Positions 1-12,100 of a DNA stretch of 64,000 nucleotides are shown in pieces. Within the stretch, counting starts at the first letter, position 1. Each line of letters begins with the position of its first letter. The stretch covers positions 1 through 64,000 of the forward strand of contig JBLDXI010000041.1 of NCBI GenBank assembly GCA_047495785.1, in the 5' to 3' direction. The position numbers and the translations under genes are program-made. This stretch comes from Lepidodermella squamata (Eukaryota > Animalia > Gastrotricha). Below the pieces are notes generated by a model, which saw only the letters and a program-made list of their open reading frames with translations, was not told where the DNA came from and searched no databases.

Positions 1-99
1 ACCCTAACCCTAACCCTAACCCTAACCCTAACCCTAACCCTAACCCTAACCCTAACCCTAACCCTAACCCTAACCCTAACCCTAACCCTAACCCAACCC
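1..99. repeat. Terminal telomeric array (CCCTAA)n, i.e. TTAGGG on the - strand
   Basis: The window starts with ~15 perfect TAACCC units and ends in a variant CAACCC. The C-rich strand on + fits a left chromosome end. Confidence 0.97.
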
Positions 100-326
100 G
101 ATCAATCGCTCTTCAACAGCACTATCTGTTAAACTTTGTTTTCAACATATAGTAAGTTTGAGGACACTAGTGTAAAACCCTTCATAACTTTTGCTTCAAC
201 GTTTGACGAATATTGAAGTAATTTGAAGTAATTTTTTTCAAAGTTATGAAACTGTTCCAAGGCAGTAGACTTATGTTGAAATGTTTACAATTTATTTATT
301 TCTAATTCTATCCTTTGTAATTTCCC

Positions 327-460
327 TGACTCCCCTGGGTCATGGTGAAATATTAATAATTTGCCTGACTCCCCTGGGTCATGGTAAAATAAATAATTTC
401 CCTGACTCCCCTGGGTCATGGTGAAATAAATTCAAACAGAAAATGACTCCCCTGGGTCAT
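327..460. repeat. Four copies of the quasi-palindrome TGACTCCCCTGGGTCAT at ~37-41 bp spacing
   Basis: Identical 17-mers start at 327, 366, 403 and 444. Confidence 0.9.
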
Positions 461-722
461 TCTTCTGATTGAATTGTATTCATTTTTTGAATACAAATTT
501 TGTCTGAGTTCCTTTGAGCCATTTGTCGGGAATTTTTTATCGGATCTCAGTATTATCGCGGAGTGGTTAGGAACACATAATTTTTGTGATGAAGAATTAT
601 CACAAACGTGAAAATGATGCTCATCTTGGATCCCTATGATGGAGTAATGGTAGGGCCCGGTTTGACTCTCGGTAAAACGAGAGGCCCCGGTTTGCAGCTC
701 GTCTGTATTAAACTATTACCAA

Positions 723-775
723 TAACCCTAACCCTAACCCTAACCCTAACCCTAACCCTAACCCTAACCCAACCC
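723..775. repeat. Internal telomeric tract (TAACCC)8 plus AACCC
   Basis: Read directly from the sequence. Confidence 0.95.
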
Positions 776-786
776 GATTCTACTAA

Positions 787-851
787 GAGGTTAAAGTTAC
801 TGATGAGCTACACTAGCCAAGTAGCGAAACCGGTCTGACGATGGCTACCTC
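787..851 (+). ncRNA. Type I hammerhead ribozyme with minimal palindromic stem III and a pseudoknot
   Basis: Core CTGATGA 800-806; stem II GCTAC/GTAGC 807-811/821-825; GAAA 826-829; stem III within ACCGGT; GTC cleavage triplet ending 835; stem I GTTA/TGAC plus GAGG/CCTC. Loop II TAGCCA (814-819) is complementary to TGGCTA (842-847). Confidence 0.88.
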
Positions 852-1162
852 AACTCGAGTAGAATCTATGCTTTAAAGTCATAAAGCATATTATTAACCT
901 TACCGTTAATATTATTGGATTAAATATCCATTCATACAAAACGTGTGCTTACCCACATGTTAAGAATTCAGAATTTTTGTATTCTCTATTCTAGTCCGTC
1001 GTGACTTATTCGGTATAGACCTAGTACTATCCGATCTACAACATTTCACCACTGATTCGACATTCTCTTGATCGGTTCTTGCGGAAATAGTGGTTGGGCC
1101 CGGCCAATTCGCTACGTACGAATTCCCGGTTTACAGCTCGTCTGTATTAAATCTAAAGAAAA

Positions 1163-1221
1163 AACCCTAACCCTAACCCTAACCCTAACCCTAACCCTAA
1201 CCCTAACCCTAACCCTAACCC
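1163..1221. repeat. Internal telomeric tract, ~10 TAACCC units, preceded by an A-rich run
   Basis: Read directly from the sequence. Confidence 0.95.
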
Positions 1222-1301
1222 CTTTTGTCATTCGAGCTCGTATTAGCACGGCCACCAACTGCGGTGGTCACACAGCACATGAAAATAATTTAGTTAAAAA
1301 T

Positions 1302-1778
1302 ATGTGCAAATTGTTTCCCTCAGATTCGCTCAACGCCGACGTCGTACAAGTCCGGGACCAGTGGGTCAACAAGGCCATCGGCGAACTCCGTACTCGTTCG
1401 GGGTACGCTCGCTCCGTAGCCGCCCACGCCGTGTACGACGACGCGTCAGATGCGTTCAGGGGCTGTGCCAACCCCGCCGAAACAGCCGACTACGCCGCCC
1501 GCGCGTTCAACAAGGCGTGTCGTCAAGGCAGCACCGTGCAAGCAATCCGTCAGATGCGCAATGTCAACTTGGGCGTGTCGAGGGAGAACTTTGTCACCGC
1601 ATGGAAAGCTGCGCTGTTCGCCATGAACGGCAAAAACCTGCGAGACAACATAGTCTGCGGGTGGCAAGTTTTGCTTGAACAGCTAGCTCAATTTGATGAA
1701 CCGAAGGACCGTAGTAACCCTACTAACCCTAACCCTAACCCTAACCCGGTATTCAATAAGAAACTAACCCAACCCTAA
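1302..1778 (+). other. GC-rich ORF fragment of unknown family between telomeric tracts
   Basis: The open frame MCKLFPSD...EPKDRS runs into telomeric repeats. It is visibly GC-richer than its flanks and has no recognisable motif. Confidence 0.3.
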
Positions 1779-1793
1779 CCCTAACCCTAACCC
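1715..1793. repeat. Two degenerate internal telomeric tracts separated by a 17-nt spacer
   Basis: TAACCC units at 1715-1747 and 1765-1793 with variants. The spacer is GGTATTCAATAAGAAAC. Confidence 0.9.
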
Positions 1794-2120
1794 CTGGTCG
1801 AGTTTTACACTTCCCCGTACAATGGGACACAAAAATGGTCGAGGAGTTAATATAATCTGTTACACCGGCAGATTTATTTTTCGCGACTACGGCAGGATAT
1901 TCGTTTTTAAATGAACACCTAATGTAGTGTTCGTTTTTTTTCCGTCTCATATATTCAACTGTTTTCGTTGGTAACATATCTTTTCGAATTGAAATAGGCA
2001 TTTATTTCCAATTGCAAATGCTCCATATAATTGCGCATATAGTTTATCCAAGAAAATAATCAGATTTTCAATTTTGCGGATTTAAAAATATTAGATCTAT
2101 AAGCATCGGGTATGGACGGC

Positions 2121-5100
2121 TCAAGCAACGGCTATCAGCGGTAATACAGTGTCTATGGCGAAACATCTTCTGATAGTAGAGTTATTTTCATCACCATCTC
2201 CTGCGACCCGCAGGATAGACTTCGACAATGTCTCTGCTGGTCGATTAAAGTTTTCGTCCAGGTAAATATGTCGGAAAAGGGTGTGAAACAGCTGAGCAGC
2301 CATGTAGTCTTCTGAAGATTCGCTCAACTCTACACAGGCGATCTAAATGAAGGTAAATTTGAAAAGCCGCTAGTTCGATAGCAAATATTTCTTTATACCA
2401 GGTGACTTGAGTTGATAGTGCGTCCACTCAGTCTTATCCTGCATGAAAAAACATGAAAAGTTATGTAACTGCATCTTGAATACTTCATGAAATATCGTTT
2501 GACTCACACTAATGATTTTACACTTCCCCGTTTCGCTACTGAGCGAACCTTCCAATTAATTTCAGATTTAGCCCAAAGCCGTGACGTTTTCATTCCTAAA
2601 ATGAGAAGCCAAGTAATACGAGCGAGAAAAATAAAGTTACCCTTATACCAGTCTTAGATTTTTCCTCTTTCCCATCGGCATGTGTTGTTTTCGCGAATAG
2701 CCAAAAGTCTAAAACCATTAATAATAATAATAATAATAATACAAAATTATATTGCACAAAAATGGCAATTTTACCGAGAAATCTTGCTAAGATGACACCG
2801 GGTTTTTTCCACCTGATTTCCTTCACATCCAGTACCACGTTGAGTGGTTCATTGACATCCATCGGGGACGAGGCAAATACGTAGCAGGTGAAGGAGAGTA
2901 GAGCAATAACCTGTCATGAAATTGCATTGAAGCGAATATAATAATTTAATAAGTTTATAATCATACCATGTTGCGTTTATCCCGACTGGATGAAAGCAGA
3001 GTTTTGTCGAAAGCCGCTGATGAATTTGATGAGCAAGGGAATGCAGCAAACGATCTCGCGTGGATCGGATGTTGGCCATTCTGTTGTTGAGGTTGCAAAA
3101 GCTGTTTCTCACGACGTACTACTTTGACACTTGGACATTCAACATCTGATATCCACTCTGGTTCAACTGGCACTAGGCTATTGACAAAGACGTGAAATGG
3201 CGGAAATCGTTGGTTTCGAGCAGCCGTCCGCTTTGACGAAGCCGACTGCGATTTGCGACGGCGAGTGTTCTGCCAAAGTGTATCGTCTGGATCGTCTTCG
3301 TCGTCATCCTCAATAGGACGATGACATAGCTGAAGCCGTAGCCAAATACTGTACGAGTGATTGACCAATTTGGAAAGACGAGGAAGTCTGATACCACTGA
3401 AAATTTCGTTTTCTTCCAGGGGCATCGGACCGTTGATTGTGTATTTTCTAGTTTAAAGATGTATAAACCGAAATGGTGTGAAATACAATGAAGGAATATT
3501 CACCTTTTAGCGTGAACACTACAGAACTTGTTAGCGACAATTAAACGTATCCTCCATTGCATGACGCTAGATTTGAGCGATGAATAAAAGTTCGCGGAAG
3601 CAGCCGTGTTATGAAGGCGACTGAAAAAAGATGCCACGGATAGTTAGTCCTATATTTACATTATTACAATGAGAGGCTCTATTCGTGGACGCGAATAGGG
3701 ATGTTATCGTTAACAAGATCTATATATTGCTATGTGCAACACGCGCCGTCTACCTCCTAACAGTGTTATTTTAGGGTTAAGATTAGTGGTCGTGTAGGAA
3801 CTCTCTCGCAACTAATAACTTGCCGATGAACTTACCGAAAGAAAATGGCTAGAACACAGTGTTTTTGATGCTCGATTAGTTGCATACGTACGGAGACAAT
3901 GCACCTCTGATAACATTCCCATTGACCTGAGGTGCGTCCGGCTACCGAGTTGCTGCTGTAACCAGAAACGGATTTGCCATCACTATTTAGTCTGAGATGC
4001 TAGTAATCTCGGGAGAAACGGATGGAAGAGCAACTTACTTGAGAAATTCGCCGTTTGTAATGGCTCCGGCTGCAGTTGCGGACAACTGTTGAGACTTGAC
4101 AGACGGCATTCCGTAACTATCGACAGCGTTAGTGCGGCGACTTGTCTCGGGTGCGATTATCTGTACAAGGTCATTTATGAGTTCAGTCGAAGAGCGCTTG
4201 ATGAGCTCGTTTGTTTGCAACGTGCCGTAGATAAGGTTGTCGAGAGACGATGGAATGCTGCCGCGGCGCCACGATGGTCTGCGATCGGCGGACATCGTCA
4301 ATCGTTCCGAGCGGTCAAGGTCGTTACTGGTTCCTGACGTTGGCAAACCACCATAAAACGAAGAAGATGACGGAACAGCGGCCGACTCGGTGCTCAGCAT
4401 TGTCATTAAGTTTGCGCCGCTCTTCCGACCGCTCGTCGCACCGGCGGTGGCACCTCCACCGGCGCCGCTGGCGTTGCTGGACCGCAGGTTTGTAAATGAG
4501 CCGCCCAGGCGCTGCTTGTCGCTGAGAAAAAAGCGAAACATGGTCAGTTTGTCGGTGAATCTGACGATGCAAATCAATATGGGTTTACGCTTGATGCGCT
4601 ATATCATTGCTTGCGTGCATTATTGCATTACAACTTAGCGTACTTAGTTTTTTCTCGCTTGAATTAGCCTCGTGCCGCGTAAAGTTTGATGATAATGGCG
4701 TGCGATGGCTGATTTTGCGCTCGTGATTTAAAGCTGGCATTTTTTATGGCGGGCCCAGATGGGCTAATCCGTAGGGATGTGTTTTTAAGCGAATTCTCGC
4801 CGGAAACTATACACACGCTTGCATTCATTTGTCCTAAAGGATTTGAAACGCGTTTATCACCAATAGGTTTGTACGCACATTTATCAATATCAAAAATATG
4901 AGATTACATGGTTGGAATGAGGAAGTTTGGCACCTTCTTCGGAACAATGACTCTTTCCTTGAGCGAAGTCGTGAGCTTGAACTGCTCGCATGTGCTACAC
5001 GGTCCGGCGCCAGGTGCATGGTTGTGGTGGTGCAGTTGGTGCGATAACAGGCTTCCGGAAGGTGTCTGGCTGACGTTTGTAAAACTTGCCAGTTTCTCAG

Positions 5101-5434
5101 CGCCACTGATCGACGGCCGGCCACTAAGGCGGCGACGCCAAGACCAAGCTGATGTTCCAGAGCCACCAGAAGCTCCGGATCCACGCTTTGGGCGATGGCT
5201 GTCACGCCTTTGTTGGCCAGTTGCAGTTCCCGCAACATTGATCGACGAGCTTGATGGCATGTTGGTGGCAGAGCAGTCCTGACTGTAAACTCCATCGTCG
5301 CTCTTGCGTCCAACTAGGCTTGAAAACTTGGATGAAAAGCTCGAAAAGAAACCACCACCACCACTTCCTGCTGCCGGGGCTGCCTCGACACTGACACTGC
5401 TCTTTGCCGACAGCATGCGGCTGTCATCGGCCAT
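2121..5434 (-). CDS. Multi-exon gene: low-complexity Ser-rich N-terminus and probable degenerate tandem C2-like (synaptotagmin-like) C-terminus
   Basis: GT-AG exons can be joined in one frame from MADDSR... to ...LIAVA*. The C-terminal pattern KSKTGMKT..EINWK...ITFHVFS...HLIACVEL resembles a C2B domain. The product call is tentative. Confidence 0.5.
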
Positions 5435-8400
5435 GTCGCACGCCGATCAGGCCGCGCTCAGGCGACCGAAGCCAGCCTTCCGAAGGCAGCGTCCAGCTGC
5501 AATTTCCAGTGTGTTGAATGTTAGGTACTTGAAAAATCCTAAAGGATTGGACGTAAAGTTTGGTGATCAAAGGCAAAAATACAGGCGGCAAGCAGAGCCA
5601 TCGGTTGCACAGCATGTAATAGTATTAAATCCATTATTGTTATTAGTGGCGAGGCCGGGTCGCAGTTAATGTAATAACCGCGTCCTCTTGGCGCTGGTTC
5701 ACCGACGTCCGCACGATCGTGCAGATGCGCGCCGCCATTCCCCTCTGTGCGGCGACACAACTCAAAGCTTCGCAGCAGAGGCAACTGGCACTCGTGCCGT
5801 ATATATATATATATTTATGTTATATTATATTCAGCTAATGCTGAGCGATATAAGGTTTTATAGATTTTTCTATTATTTTCATGAAAGTGTAAAGTATATA
5901 TAATAATATTACGGTTCACTCTTGAAATGAGCCATTTACCGCCGTCGCTGTTTTGCCTATCCTCTCTCGCCGTAAGATTGCAAGGGAGAAAAACGGCGGC
6001 GGCGCCGACGATACACGCGCAGCCGGGCTCTACTTGTCCCAGCTTGCCCGCCGGTACGACGCCATATCGCCGAGAAGTCAACAAGCGATAAGTTGATATT
6101 GTACGCGAACGTGAACTTCACCGGCGAAATCGATGGTTCACTTTGCTCTCAGCAAAATGCATGTATGCTGCCGCATACGCCGTCATCGCCTACACATGCG
6201 AATAGGAAGTTTTCAATATATTTCTTAAGCAACAAATAAAATCTAAGCTTACAGCGCCGAGCTGGCGTGAGAATTAGGTTGCGGTGTGGAGAAAACCATC
6301 ATTCAGCCAAGGAAGATCACACGACTATGCTAATACAACGTTATCAACTACGTTGATGCTGAACCGTAGCTTCAGCAGCACTCTGAGCTTTCCGTTTAAT
6401 CAATTTGCAACAAAGTAAAACCATCGACTTGCAAAGGTCACGTCTGCTTTTATTGCGGCAACTTAGTTAACTTATCAGGCTAATCATCACCTTGGCTGCA
6501 GGGTGTATATTTTAGCGCTGCGTTCGATTTGGGCACATAGTCGGGCATTTCGATGCGCAGTCTTTTTGACAACATGTCTGACGAATGCAGGTGCACGACA
6601 TGTGTATGTGTATGTGTGTGCGTATGTGTTTGCGTCCGCGCCTGGCTAGTGAGAAATTAAAAATCGAGCGAAAATTCGAACAGCAAATAGTGAACGAGGC
6701 TTTAATCACAGCTTGTGCTCGCCCGCGCCGTGTAAACTCAGTATATCAATATAGCGGCAGCCCATTTTTTATGCGCGCGTATACTATCTACGAACATCAG
6801 CATGCCGCGTTGTTAATATGTAATTTTATATAGAATCTAGAAAATTATCGTGGAAAATAAATATTATAGGGATTAGCCACGCTCCTCTATATTTTGTGCA
6901 TCCGCAGCCGAGCGAGAACACGCAGCCATCTTTGACGCCATCTCCACCTCGCCAGCAGCAGCTGAAAGGCCGCTCAAATATTATGCGCTGCACGTAATGC
7001 GAAAATTTCAGACTCTGCGTGTCGCGATCTGTGATAATCTGATGGCCTTTGTCGTGCGTGCGTATTCTCTACCGGATGCGCAGCTACGGGGAAGCAATAT
7101 ATTCACAATTTTTCCATCAACGACCAAATCATTTGACGCGGAAATGGCACACTGATTTGAGGATGAGCAAAATATATTCACAGCAGAACTAAATTATCAG
7201 TTTCACGCTGCACCAGCCGATTTTTGTGTTTGCTTGTAAATGATAATTATTCCTGGCAATAAAACCGAGCATACATATCGGCACGAAACTCCAAATAGCA
7301 GAAAAGCATATTTGCATTTTACATCGAGCCATCTTACATTTAGCGGTACATATAAAAATTCGTTCAGTGAATCGACAGCCTTTTTCGTTATTCTTCCATT
7401 CCCACAGCGATGAGCTTCCGAATGAACTTGTTTTTGGCAGTTTTGCGACGCCACGCGACTCCGCAGCGGTTCTACTGAAATATTCAATACGAAATCATGC
7501 TACGTTTTTTAGGTTGGTTGAGCGAGATTCGCAAGAAACTGAGTGAGCGAGCAAGAAAAAGAGTTTTTGTCGCAATGTCCTGCGCGTTGTACCATAACCG
7601 CATAATCGTATAAAGATTGCGACACTTACTCAGGTTGAGGCTCGCCAATTAACTACTTTTCTCGTTTCTTTATACCTTTAATTTAATTTCTCTACCACAT
7701 TAAAAGAGTCTCAAGGCCGCTGAAATAGTGTGCGCCTCACGCTGCACGTAATGCGTAGGCGTCTTTCTCAAGGCGCAATTTTTGAATGTATTATTACAAA
7801 GTTGTATTTGTCGAAATTTTAAATGTCAGTTGTGAGATTTATTTGCAAAAAATAGCGAAACAAATAAAAAATAATGCACAAAATAATAATCCATTTTTAT
7901 TCGAACGAAATTTGAATATCGCGCGCTATTTTGCAAATGCATCAATATCGGGCCTAATACCTATGAACTGAGAAGAGGAGAAAGAAGGGAAAGATTAAAG
8001 AAAAAACGAAAGCATTTCGGCGGTAAAAAACAAGACGATGTTATAGAAAATTGATGAGCTTTAATAAGATTCATCAAGTCTGCTGTTTAGAGGTGATATT
8101 CATCACTTATATTTTTTGGTAACCTAGAGTGTTGTATAATAAGTATGCCTTATATATCAGGCAACGCAGCTGTTGAAAAAGGGCCGGTCAATGATTATGC
8201 AGTTGGAAACTGAAGAAAAAATTGCGAGGGAAGTTGTACATTTAAAAGATCTTGACACACCTGAAAGTGGTTACTTACCGGCAATCGACATAAAACGGCA
8301 AACGGCAATAATCAGTTTTCCTGCCAAGTTTTTTGCTAAGTGATTATATGGTATTTTCAACTTATTGCAATAGAATAGCGCAAAATTGCCACTTCTACTT

Positions 8401-9143
8401 ATATGCAAATTTTTGATGTAAGGATAATGTTGTAATCAAAAATAAAAAATTGCTACTGAATGCTTATTTTCTAAAAAGAGCCGTGCAAAATTGAAATTAT
8501 CCATCAGAGCCTTTATACAGGATACTTTTTGTGAGATTGGAGCTAAATCTGAGCACGTTCAAAATAATTGATACGGCTGCCAGCGTTGAAACTAGCGGAT
8601 TGTTACCTTGCATATTGCCCAAGTATACAACCAATAAAATACGATCATTCGGGCGCTGAATTGCGCTTTAATTAACTTATTTAACTTGACACATCTCATC
8701 ACTTATTCAAATAGGATCAATAAAATAGGCTATTTCAAATAATTAAGTATAAGGCTTTGTAGTGGCTACTAGTCTATTTATTTCTCGAAGTAGAAGGGGA
8801 CGACGTTTCGGACACAAGTGCTATTTGACTGAATTTTCTGAAAAAGCCCAAAACTATTTCAAACTTCTGCTTGACCTAGTAGATTCAACCTATGAATAAA
8901 TAAAATGCGAAGAAAAGCTGCCGCTTAAAACAAAGATGGAGGATCCGGCGACAGACCTGTTGACAGGCTCATCGATCACGACATGTTAGACAAACTGGAA
9001 ACATCAACAGGTGACGTAATGGCAGTAGGAAGCTAGTGCTGTTTAGAAAAGCATAACTATTTGCTATTTCCCTTTAATCATTTTTGGATTTCTTAGATAG
9101 CTTAGCCATCTTTGGAAAGAATAAGCCGTAAGCACCTCTCATT

Positions 9144-12100
9144 ATGAACATAAGTGGATTGCTGAAACCCGGAACATTACTATGCAAAAGCAAATGGAAA
9201 GATTCGACGCTGGCTAAAATTTTGACAGGTAAAATTTGACAGGTTTAAATTATATATCGTCCAACAAAGGCCTTTGCTCACAGAATCTTTGCAGTTAAAT
9301 TTTTCCTCGTGTCTTACCGATGAGAATGCTGACTTTTATTTATCTGACAACAGCAGCGTAGTTTTCATGCAGGTGGGTCATTATTTTGCTAACCGTCGGA
9401 TTAATCATCGAAATGCTAACAAAAATGTGGACCTCTGATATTCTTACACAATCTTGTTCAGCACCTTCGAAAACCTCTAACAGTCGACATGTGATGAGCT
9501 GAAAATGGTTCGAAATAATTTAGGTCAGGCCTCAAATAAAGGGCGGTCTCACATATAAGACGGGGTTTCGACTTGTTTTGCAAAAAATAAAGGACAGGCC
9601 CAACATTTCTAGCGCAGTACGGTATATGCAGCGATGCTTTATAGCCGAGAGATTTATAGCTTTAGCTGACGCTTTTTTTGGATTTTGAGTCTGAAAACCG
9701 AAAAAATGCCTAGTTTCTTAGTGTGGATCTATTTTGCAAACAGCAGATTGAAGCAAAACTCGCCAAAATGTGGCCAAATCACAATTTCTTACTTGTCACA
9801 GGTGTTTTCTTATTGGTCAAGCCCATTTTCTTAATTGTCAATTAATTGTCAAATAGGTTAAGAGGGAACGCTGGTCGCCACCTTGTTGAGTGCATTTCTG
9901 CCCATTGGCCGCCTTAGCTATACCGGTTAAAACTAAAGCTTTTGCAACCTTATTGATTGTTGAATTGAGTTTAGATCCCTGAGAAAGCATTCTATACAAA
10001 AAAAACCTAGGAGTTCTAGAACCAGAGCGCAAATGTTAACTACTGGCTATAACGCGAGCGAAGCGAGCTTTAGCTGGCGCTATTTCTGTGGCGTTTTCCG
10101 CAGGAATAGCCTAAAAATGCTCCGAATTTGGGTTGAGAGCTGAAAATTTCCAGGGGGCGAGAGTTCGAGAAAAATCTCGTCAGGCCCCCCTCTGGCGCCG
10201 CTACTGCACCTGTCGCGCTGCGGTCACGGCATAAGCAAAAACAAGAACAAAAAAGCAAAAAAACCCGCGCGGCGCCCCCGGAAAACGCGAATCACGTGGC
10301 AAAATTCATAATGCAATGCATTTTTATTCGTATTATTTTTATTTCATTGCAAAAAATATTTTCCATTAATAAAACAAATTGGAATTTGCTCACCCCGCCG
10401 AAAATCGCGGGTAGCGCGCGCGGCAGCGCGAAATTCGAGCGGGCCGAGATGCGACGCTCTAGTAAAGACGTAAAGAGATAAAGAAGTAAAGAAATAAAGA
10501 TATAAAGAATCTCGAAGTTTCCAACCCCTTTATTAACAGAGATGAGAATGGGTCGGTTTGTCGTTTCGGTCACCTTTTCCGCCAAATCACCATGGGTCCT
10601 GGGTCGCCTCCACGCCTCACAGAGCCCGGCTCAAGCCCGACGCAAGTTTTGCTGTTTCAAGCCATGAAAAGTGGCTACTTGTAATTTAGTCTGTGTTTTT
10701 TGAGCTAGGAGACATGTGAAAGTGAATGTTTGAACTTTTTGACGATTGTCGATGAGAATATAAGGCGTGAAATGCATAAAAAGAACGTCACAAGTAATCC
10801 GCTTCAAAATTACGAAATTTAGATATGTGGGTCACTTGGGTTATAAAAGTTGGGTCCTGGGTCCCCCGGCATGGGTCTCCTCGGGTCTTGGGTCGATTTT
10901 TTTACGCATTCTATTGTAGGTGGTGTTTTGCATAGTGAACTCAGTGATGAATCACAGCCGTGTTTTTTCTTGACTTGTTATGTGGTGATGGTGGTGCGGT
11001 CATGAAGTCGGTTAGTTTTTAGCAGATTAATTTGATTGAGATGAATGAAAAATAATTGCAACAGCTACTACCACAACAAAATTCACCACCTCACCACCGC
11101 ACCATCGATCAGTGAATAAAAATGAACTTCGACCCTGCAAACCCGGCCTACAATGCCCTCTCATCTCTGTTTATTAACCAACGAATTTGACGTACCAGGA
11201 AAATCGGCCACAAAACCAACCATAGGGCGTGACAAAAAATTACCCATTTCTCATTAATAACATGCTCTCTGATCAAAATATGGAAAAATATGTAACATGA
11301 CAGAGCCTGATATTCATGATTCATGTTCGACGATAGGAGCATGAAGTCATCCGCTTTGGCGCTGAGTGCGAAGATCACGAGTTTTACCACCATTACGCCA
11401 AGCAAATATCGCTCGAATCGGTTTGTTTTGCCCGGTCTTCCATGATAATTCAGTATACATAATCATTTTTCTGCTGAATCTTGTAGAATGCGACTTTTCT
11501 GCTGGAAAGAACAGTCTTGTCATCAGGCTGCTTCTTCACTTTGCAGGTTAATATTATCTGCAAGCACGATTCCGAGTCGAGATGACAGTTTGTTTTTAAT
11601 AATTTTTCAGTCTTACATTGCCGTAAAACTTCGCGCCAATTGTCATCCCGTTACTGGAGTTGCCGATGCCGCTGCTTTCATCAAGCTACTGGTAGGCTTC
11701 TTCCATCTTTTCACTCTTTCCTCTTGTTATATACACATGGTGTATTCAGAACAACGTCGATTTATCTGATTTGTCAAAAAAAGTACCGCATGCATCCACA
11801 GAGGAAGTCATGCTGTCATGCATGCAGTCCATACCATCTGTTGGTCCGACGAAAGCTCGCCAGATAGTAGCCAGATTTGATAGTAAGTTTCGACTTTCGT
11901 CGCGTCTTGGCGTGGACGCAAATTTTCAAATTTCCCAAATTTCCAAATTTCTAATTCGAAAACGAAAATCTCTTGGCGCGGTTTTCCTTTGCCATCGCTC
12001 GCAAATTCTGATATGAAAATGATTAATGCTTGGCAAAAAAATTGCAGGTATGGATGCGATTTTCAAGGCGGAATCTTCAGGGCAGCTTTGCGAACTTGTT

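Follow-up and report, generated by a model that had tools for sequence, protein, structure and literature searches.

A module of about 85 nt, made up of two small hairpins and a telomere-like box, closes each of two non-coding units that lie at a chromosome end of Lepidodermella squamata. We consider it probable that this module is the 3' cis-element of non-coding retroelements that are copied onto chromosome ends by Athena/Terminon-type Penelope-like reverse transcriptases (RTs) encoded in neighbouring stacked elements.

The window, by which we mean the whole 64-kb stretch of DNA that was analysed, begins at a chromosome end and bears (CCCTAA)n tracts at 1-99, 723-775, 1163-1221 and 1723-1793; the first three of these and all features of units 1 and 2 given below lie on the + strand. 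The terminal tract (1-99) is C-strand telomere repeat that ends in irregular CCCAACCCG, the tract between units 1 and 2, annotated at 726-776, ends in CCCAACCCG as well, and the tract onto which unit 2 attached is annotated at 1165-1221. The remainder of the window holds ordinary eukaryotic genes, including an Argonaute, a P4-ATPase, a SET/bromo/PHD protein and an adaptin, and the assembly searched (121 Mb, 151 contigs) represents a compact genome with long exons poor in introns. The irregular CCCTAACCCAACCCG precedes the element start at three independent 5' junctions (window 86-100, window 762-776 and L028:1159-1176), while the remaining 5' junctions finish as CCC, CCCA, CCCCA or CCCCAA; fresh telomere synthesis on the cDNA end seems to begin with a G run.

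Both units are 5'-truncated. Unit 1 (101-725) represents the final ~620 nt of an A-type unit that is ~5 kb long and non-coding, a full copy of which stands at L029:713-5715, with BLAST identities of 96-98% to L029, L036, L032 and L031. Unit 2 (777-1164) comprises 388 nt from the 3' end of a longer unit of the B type (97.9% identity to L042:5445-5831 on contig C20), and its 5' truncation point falls just before a hammerhead motif. In unit 1, the module runs through TGGTAGGGCCCGG (648-660), the hairpin arms CTCTCG (666-671) and CGAGAG (678-683) and a 27-nt box, CCCGG...GTATTAAA (686-712), to a linker (708-725) and (CCCTAA)n from 726. Unit 2 follows the same plan, with TGGTTGGGCCCGG at 1091-1103, the arms AATTCG (1106-1111) and CGAATT (1119-1124), the 27-nt box at 1125-1151 and (CCCTAA)n from 1165. 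The shared 3' module reported in the preliminary description is therefore present where it had been placed, and the two 27-mers differ solely at one purine (R) position; the 27-nt box matches twice in the window and not once in window shuffles. Homology between units 1 and 2 by BLAST is confined to the module, and no other sequence can be aligned.

The two 6-bp hairpins had been described as swapped within one slot, and they do share the slot while differing in sequence, although the stem can extend to 7-8 bp. Across the genome, the slot of this first hairpin (hairpin 1) holds seven versions in all, with the contents CTCTCG/CGAGAG, AATTCG/CGAATT, ATTCTC/GAGAAT, TTTCTC/GAGAAA and TTTTCC/GGAAAA, a G.U version (CTCTTG), and a CTCTCA version that occurs in a single copy and is without the apical pair; two decayed interior copies also fill the slot, and copies on contig C29 show broken pairs. 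In a MAFFT alignment the arms stand in register, columns 26-33 pairing with columns 40-47, and both-sided, pairing-preserving changes occur at six of eight pairs among 12 distinct rows, which represent only about six independent lineages of a single genome. Pairing is kept in 89.4% of the paired cells, compared to 27-50% in registers with the 3' partners slid, and none of 500 shuffles reached the covariation score. The loops vary as well (GUAAAA, CUACGUA, UUCG, UUAG, UUCU). Because the further genomic copies, which were collected as a test of pairing in the variable slot, keep that pairing, we regard hairpin 1 as real. The compensatory changes, together with G.U pairs on the sense strand, also support the earlier suggestion that structure conserved without sequence marks an RNA-level element; on the opposite strand these would read as C.A mismatches, and the structure thus belongs to the sense strand. 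The covariation speaks for hairpin 1, the other helices of the module being either invariant or changed by wobble only.

Those other helices are predicted by RNAalifold and by folds of single sequences. A CCGG/CCGG clamp, which had been suggested to close hairpin 1, is invariant and formed in every single-sequence fold; in unit 1 it would pair 657-660 with 687-690 around hairpin 1 and its GUAAAA loop, and in unit 2 it would pair 1100-1103 with 1126-1129 around hairpin 1 and its CUACGUA loop. The near-identity of the 3' 27-nt box had been recognised before, but the box itself holds a predicted second hairpin that was then passed over. This hairpin 2 has the consensus URCAG-CUCGU-CUGUA, read as UGCAG-CUCGU-CUGUA in unit 1 (693-707) and as UACAG-CUCGU-CUGUA in unit 2 (1132-1146), and its substitutions are limited to those compatible with wobble (G.U to A-U and G-C to G.U). 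With this pairing, the R position at which the two boxes differ becomes a switch between G.U and A-U. Pairing of the hairpin 2 loop with a hairpin 1 arm was seen only in version A and was rejected.

Upstream of the clamp lies an invariant G-box with the core GGUWGGG, a degenerate G-strand telomere box of two repeats (GGAGTAATGGTAGGG at 641-655 in unit 1; TAGTGGTTGGG at 1088-1098 in unit 2), which is predicted to form a closing helix with the first CCCUAACC of the tail. Folded singly, five versions of the module each give the same predicted three-way junction, with which the consensus fold agrees. Folding z-scores are modest (-1.0 to -2.3), so the structural case rests on conserved topology and covariation and not on stability. 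Between hairpin 2 and the first CCCTAA there are 16-20 nt of A/T-rich linker, free in sequence and predicted to be unstructured, after which comes the AACCCUAAC tail. The linker is 18 nt long in both units (708-725 and 1147-1164), that of unit 2 having the same sequence in its C20 copy. At tandem-internal junctions of full-length units the linker is encoded along with a single CCCTAAC, and since it is identical there, linker and tail are templated.

The templated linker bears on a possibility also raised in the preliminary description, a 3'-end processing or poly(A)-like signal. On such a reading, AUUAAA would direct cleavage at the CCCUAAC tail, which follows 10-30 nt downstream, and the hairpins would be auxiliary elements. 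In versions A, B, C and D an ATTAAA hexamer does lie 13-19 nt upstream of the first CCCTAA, a spacing that would put cleavage at the tail. However, the hexamer is missing from version G (GTAGTCACAC...; GTAGTCACACACC..), which is nevertheless joined to telomere repeats on C13 and occurs tandem-internally on C20; the copy on C35 reads ACTAAA; the X-type module of the RT elements described below is without it; and no untemplated A run was observed, the linker being encoded at internal junctions. We thus find the poly(A) interpretation of the hexamer unlikely, and the suggestion of a poly(A)-like signal is not supported.

The predicted junction also has a bearing on self-cleavage. A degenerate hammerhead or a ribozyme of a new class might trim the RNA and so expose the telomere-complementary tail, as would fit the description of Terminon 3' ends as a hammerhead fold just before the telomere repeats (PMC6431247); the module's predicted three helices around one junction are ordered as in a type I hammerhead, and hairpin 2 contains a conserved GUC. 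The conserved core is nonetheless absent from the module: it has neither the CUGANGA nor the GAAA box, its junction strands being C, UU and 16-20 nt. In agreement with the earlier failure to place the module in a known ribozyme class, Rfam searches with E up to 10 returned no ribozyme family over 640-725 or 1082-1165. Versions B, C, D and G, moreover, already bear a genuine hammerhead motif farther upstream, and a self-cleaving module appears highly improbable to us.

Genome-wide, the 27-nt box gave 27 matches at up to three mismatches, against none for a reversed control pattern. A covariance model built from the MAFFT alignment of 12 distinct module versions returned 33 genomic matches, 31 of them strong. 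All 15 matches on the + strand are found no farther than 66 kb from the left end of a contig, and most of those on the - strand lie at right ends, ten of them no more than 23 kb from known right ends (C21, C55, C32). Interior copies are few and score weaker, and the three that were examined (on C29 and at C13:4392756) are decayed or truncated. This uniform polarity means that the sense strand of the module is always the C-strand, as expected if a G-overhang primes. At its 3' end each copy is followed by a telomere tract whose length differs between copies, while 5' ends vary among copies of 85, 192, 250, 622 and ~2000 nt and the full ~5 kb. The copies therefore resemble Athena and Terminon elements in their 3' reverse-complement telomere repeats, in their single orientation relative to the chromosome end, and in being 5'-truncated, capped by telomere tracts and stacked head-to-tail.

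The same distribution might arise if recombination or break-induced replication had spread the module as a subtelomeric DNA repeat, the hairpin being an incidental palindrome with no RNA role. Composite blocks with identical tract lengths are duplicated at C13 and C55, so that DNA-level copying does occur, and part of the copy number reflects such duplication of composite blocks, C13 repeating identical blocks with identical tract lengths. Against this stand the compensatory changes that preserve pairing between lineages, the strand-specific G.U pairs, and a fixed 3' end with varying 5' truncation points and uniform polarity on at least eight chromosome ends. We therefore judge it very unlikely that copying of DNA alone explains the module.

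The carrier units have no open reading frame beyond shuffle expectation, and A, B, C, D and G units cannot be aligned with one another in their bodies, whereas the module flanks are near-invariant. The B unit retains a faint remnant of an ORF found downstream of RT (tblastn, 25% over 95 aa, E 4e-7), as would be expected if the module were a relic 3' UTR of formerly autonomous elements, kept by recent common descent and without present function. Yet unalignable bodies alongside near-invariant flanks and a co-varying stem point to selection and not to recency, and interior copies do decay, as the broken pairs of the C29 copies illustrate; a functionless relic is, in our judgement, quite unlikely.

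The hammerhead motif of the window (785-870) is of type I, with CTGATGAG at 800-807, helix II CTAC/GTAG, CGAAAC at 825-830 and GUC at 833-835. Rfam with E up to 10 over window 90-1900 returned only a weak, sub-threshold HH9 match to it (796-839, 15 bits, E 2.9), and at gathering scores there was no match in the whole window. Versions B, C, D and G carry this motif in copies that are 91% conserved, at ~240-290 nt upstream of the module. No hammerhead core occurs in the A type, the commonest one, to which unit 1 belongs, so that the module is the sole block common to all carriers. An Rfam search of the start of a full-length unit and of the whole A-type unit likewise gave no ribozyme, sensitivity being low at that search size. 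Other scans were also negative: ARAGORN found no tRNA-like part, a scan for bacterial-type promoters and terminators gave nothing above chance, and a metagenome scan for the 3' box returned five matches, all attributable to chance and without module context or telomere repeats.

Several features of the unit bodies are recorded here for their own sake. Within unit 1, about three and a half copies are present (window 318-461) of a repeat 37 bp long, which holds the near-palindrome TGACTCCCCTGGGTCA and is kept in every A-type copy. The A-type body at L029:1560-4650 (C13:21560-24650) is a ~180-bp satellite with recurrent GGTCCGCTGATGRCG, a motif resembling half a hammerhead core from which helix II and the GAAA partner are absent. 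Full-length non-coding units open with conserved TCTYGCCCGTTCGGTMCAATGKATCACC (L029:713-760; L042:3421-3460; L001, L013), which abuts the single CCCTAAC of the preceding unit and gave no Rfam ribozyme match at that site. Elsewhere at chromosome ends, a 16-nt insert, CACATCTCGTGAGAGT, is flanked by two long CCCTAA tracts at the C13 end (L028:1118-1133), and TTAGGG-strand tracts with an inverted RT copy lie close to the C21 terminus (L041, C21:2665001-2674224), where they indicate either an inverted terminal segment or an assembly join.

RT elements occur in the same stacks as the module. Their RTs show a weak RVT_1 match and no GIY-YIG domain, and the two distant relatives that we retrieved from databases both combine RT with GIY-YIG. 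This combination is the Penelope-like signature, and by their sequence the neighbouring RTs are taken to be endonuclease-less Penelope-like enzymes. When PDB sequences were searched with the neighbouring RT, the matches, to group II intron and retron RTs, were all insignificant. Forty-nine RT matches are dispersed in the genome, many of them at contig ends. One element on C13 (about 1174-10123) has a pseudo-LTR layout, in which hammerhead and 3' module precede the ORFs and recur after them ahead of a telomere tract. RT families on C13 and C57 finish in a module that differs in sequence yet resembles the studied one in build, the X type, which in 30 copies comprises GCCGG, a hairpin slot swapped among at least five versions, CYGTCTGGTAWT, a linker of 17-18 nt in most versions, and CCCTAAC. 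The X type and the module studied here have in common only the CCGG box, the swapped hairpin slot, the GTCTG box and the linker length. A further, Y-type end (GGACCRYAG...) closes other RT elements and unit 3 of the window. No RT-bearing element ending in exactly the studied module was found among the 49 RT matches and the loci examined. An RT without GIY-YIG, which Athena and Terminon elements encode themselves, is here present only in neighbouring elements, and the module carriers, being non-coding, are at most non-autonomous associates of a Penelope-like system.

Unit 3 (1222-1722) is a coding tail, rich in GC, with an ORF that continues into telomere repeats and with a Y-type end that reads GGACCGTAGTAACCCTACTAA; a near-twin with 99.6% identity on C20 (L042:2350-2849) reaches further 5'. 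In the last tract of the window, a 20-nt insert, GGTATTCAATAAGAAACTAA, at 1748-1767 is flanked by CCCTAA repeats and agrees with the final ~20 nt of X-type ends (compare GGTATTCACATTGATCTAA at L042:3247-3265), and a similar stub of 37 nt of an X-type end lies at L034:3044-3080; both stubs look like abortive cDNAs that broke off in the X hairpin, at its foot or loop. Hammerheads of RT elements (L028:2998-3026, L034:266-294, L033:6839-6867) were compared to the non-coding hammerhead at window 800-830. The two groups are closely related and share AGTCA-CTGATGAG...CGAAAC-CGGTC-TGA, with palindromic ACCGGT at helix III, while helix I is swapped (GCAAC/GTTGC versus GAGG/CCTC), as is helix II (CCTG/CAGG versus CTAC/GTAG).

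A role for the module in RT recognition or initiation is plausible, as suggested by its anatomy, by the telomere-end polarity of all copies and by analogy to a Penelope-like element of Anolis. In the priming model put forward for Athena and Terminon elements (PMC6431247, PMC8557442), applied to the present units, the CCCUAAC tail would pair with the TTAGGG 3' overhang of the chromosome, and the overhang would prime cDNA synthesis of the module first and of the body thereafter. Synthesis would frequently abort, generating 5'-truncated units, and telomerase would then re-cap the end with the next (CCCTAA)n tract. This model fits the polarity, truncations and tracts that we observed. The folded module would most likely keep the docked enzyme at a constant spacing from the tail that binds the primer, a suggestion drawn from the fixed linker length and from the Anolis element. 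The G-box may keep the tail in the closing helix until a perfectly matching overhang displaces it, and so could, hypothetically, hand the tail to the overhang.

More tentatively, and as a possibility to which we give limited weight, the module could be a primer-docking RNA for a telomerase-related RT. Its three-way junction would present a mimic of the telomere G-strand that holds the C-strand tail, the chromosome overhang would displace this mimic by strand exchange, the hairpins would set the enzyme 16-20 nt from the start site, and the module would be the sole required part of these gene-less passengers. If this were true, the module would stand, as a natural intermediate, between the 3' end of a retroelement and the template of a telomerase RNA with a boundary element.

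Among known systems, the closest in anatomy are the endonuclease-deficient Penelope-like Athena and Terminon elements of bdelloid rotifers, at whose 3' ends a fold occurs together with reverse-complement telomere repeats that would pair with G-overhangs (PMC6431247, PMC8557442). The units described here likewise attach to chromosome ends, form head-to-tail stacks of 5'-truncated copies with short telomere tracts between them, and place a structured 3' fold before a short reverse-complement telomere repeat, with a hammerhead in the same terminal region (PMC6431247, PMC8557442). In Athena and Terminon elements, however, it is the hammerhead that folds beside the repeats, which read (ACACCC)n or (TCACCC)n, whereas here a predicted two-hairpin junction without a ribozyme core is joined by a telomere-like G-box and a CCCTAA repeat on non-coding carriers. 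The hammerhead accordingly does not directly precede the telomere-complementary repeats, but lies 240-290 nt further upstream or, in the A type, is absent. The telomere repeat of rotifers is TGTGGG (PMC7943196), and since the host repeat here is TTAGGG, the system may lie outside the bdelloid rotifers, in which Athena was described.

The analogy that bears most on initiation comes from an Anolis Poseidon Penelope-like element, whose reverse transcription begins within a stem-loop that lies downstream of the hammerhead (Frangieh et al. 2024, PMC11167929). The region of that stem-loop contains a protein-binding RNA motif, the start is internal to longer transcripts, and hammerhead cleavage is dispensable (PMC11167929). 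The Poseidon element differs in having an endonuclease, in targeting AT-rich DNA and in initiating without primer homology (PMC11167929). In the present system, the proposed start site is instead the telomere-complementary tail.

Stringent LINE/SINE pairs such as eel UnaL2 and UnaSINE1 also include a non-autonomous element that ends in a short 3' stem-loop and a repeat tail. The shape of that stem counts and not its sequence, the stem-loop being the handle of the partner RT. These pairs belong to another retroelement class, and the present module differs further in that no autonomous partner with an identical module was found among the loci examined. Animal non-LTR retrozymes represent non-autonomous pLTR derivatives of Penelope-like elements (PMC7229834; bioRxiv 10.64898/2026.07.22.740005). 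The units described here resemble them in being non-coding, in forming tandem arrays, in their hammerhead and in their kinship to Penelope-like terminal regions, a combination present in types B, C, D and G and incomplete in the A type, where the hammerhead is missing. Whereas retrozymes occur dispersed or in tandem and are thought to move via circular RNA, the present units are telomere-confined, end in a telomere-complementary tail and are, in their commonest type, without a hammerhead.

Telomere-attaching Penelope-like elements are the nearest retroelement relatives of telomerase, and very little is known of the RNA features that their enzymes recognise. The ~85-nt element, represented by about 30 copies from about six lineages, combines a covariation-supported hairpin, a fixed tail spacing and a telomere-like box, and provides a small, testable RNA substrate with which to address how such enzymes choose templates and use overhangs as primers. 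From the systems covered in review descriptions it differs by a predicted non-hammerhead fold beside the repeats, a telomere-like box, non-coding carriers and a TTAGGG repeat.
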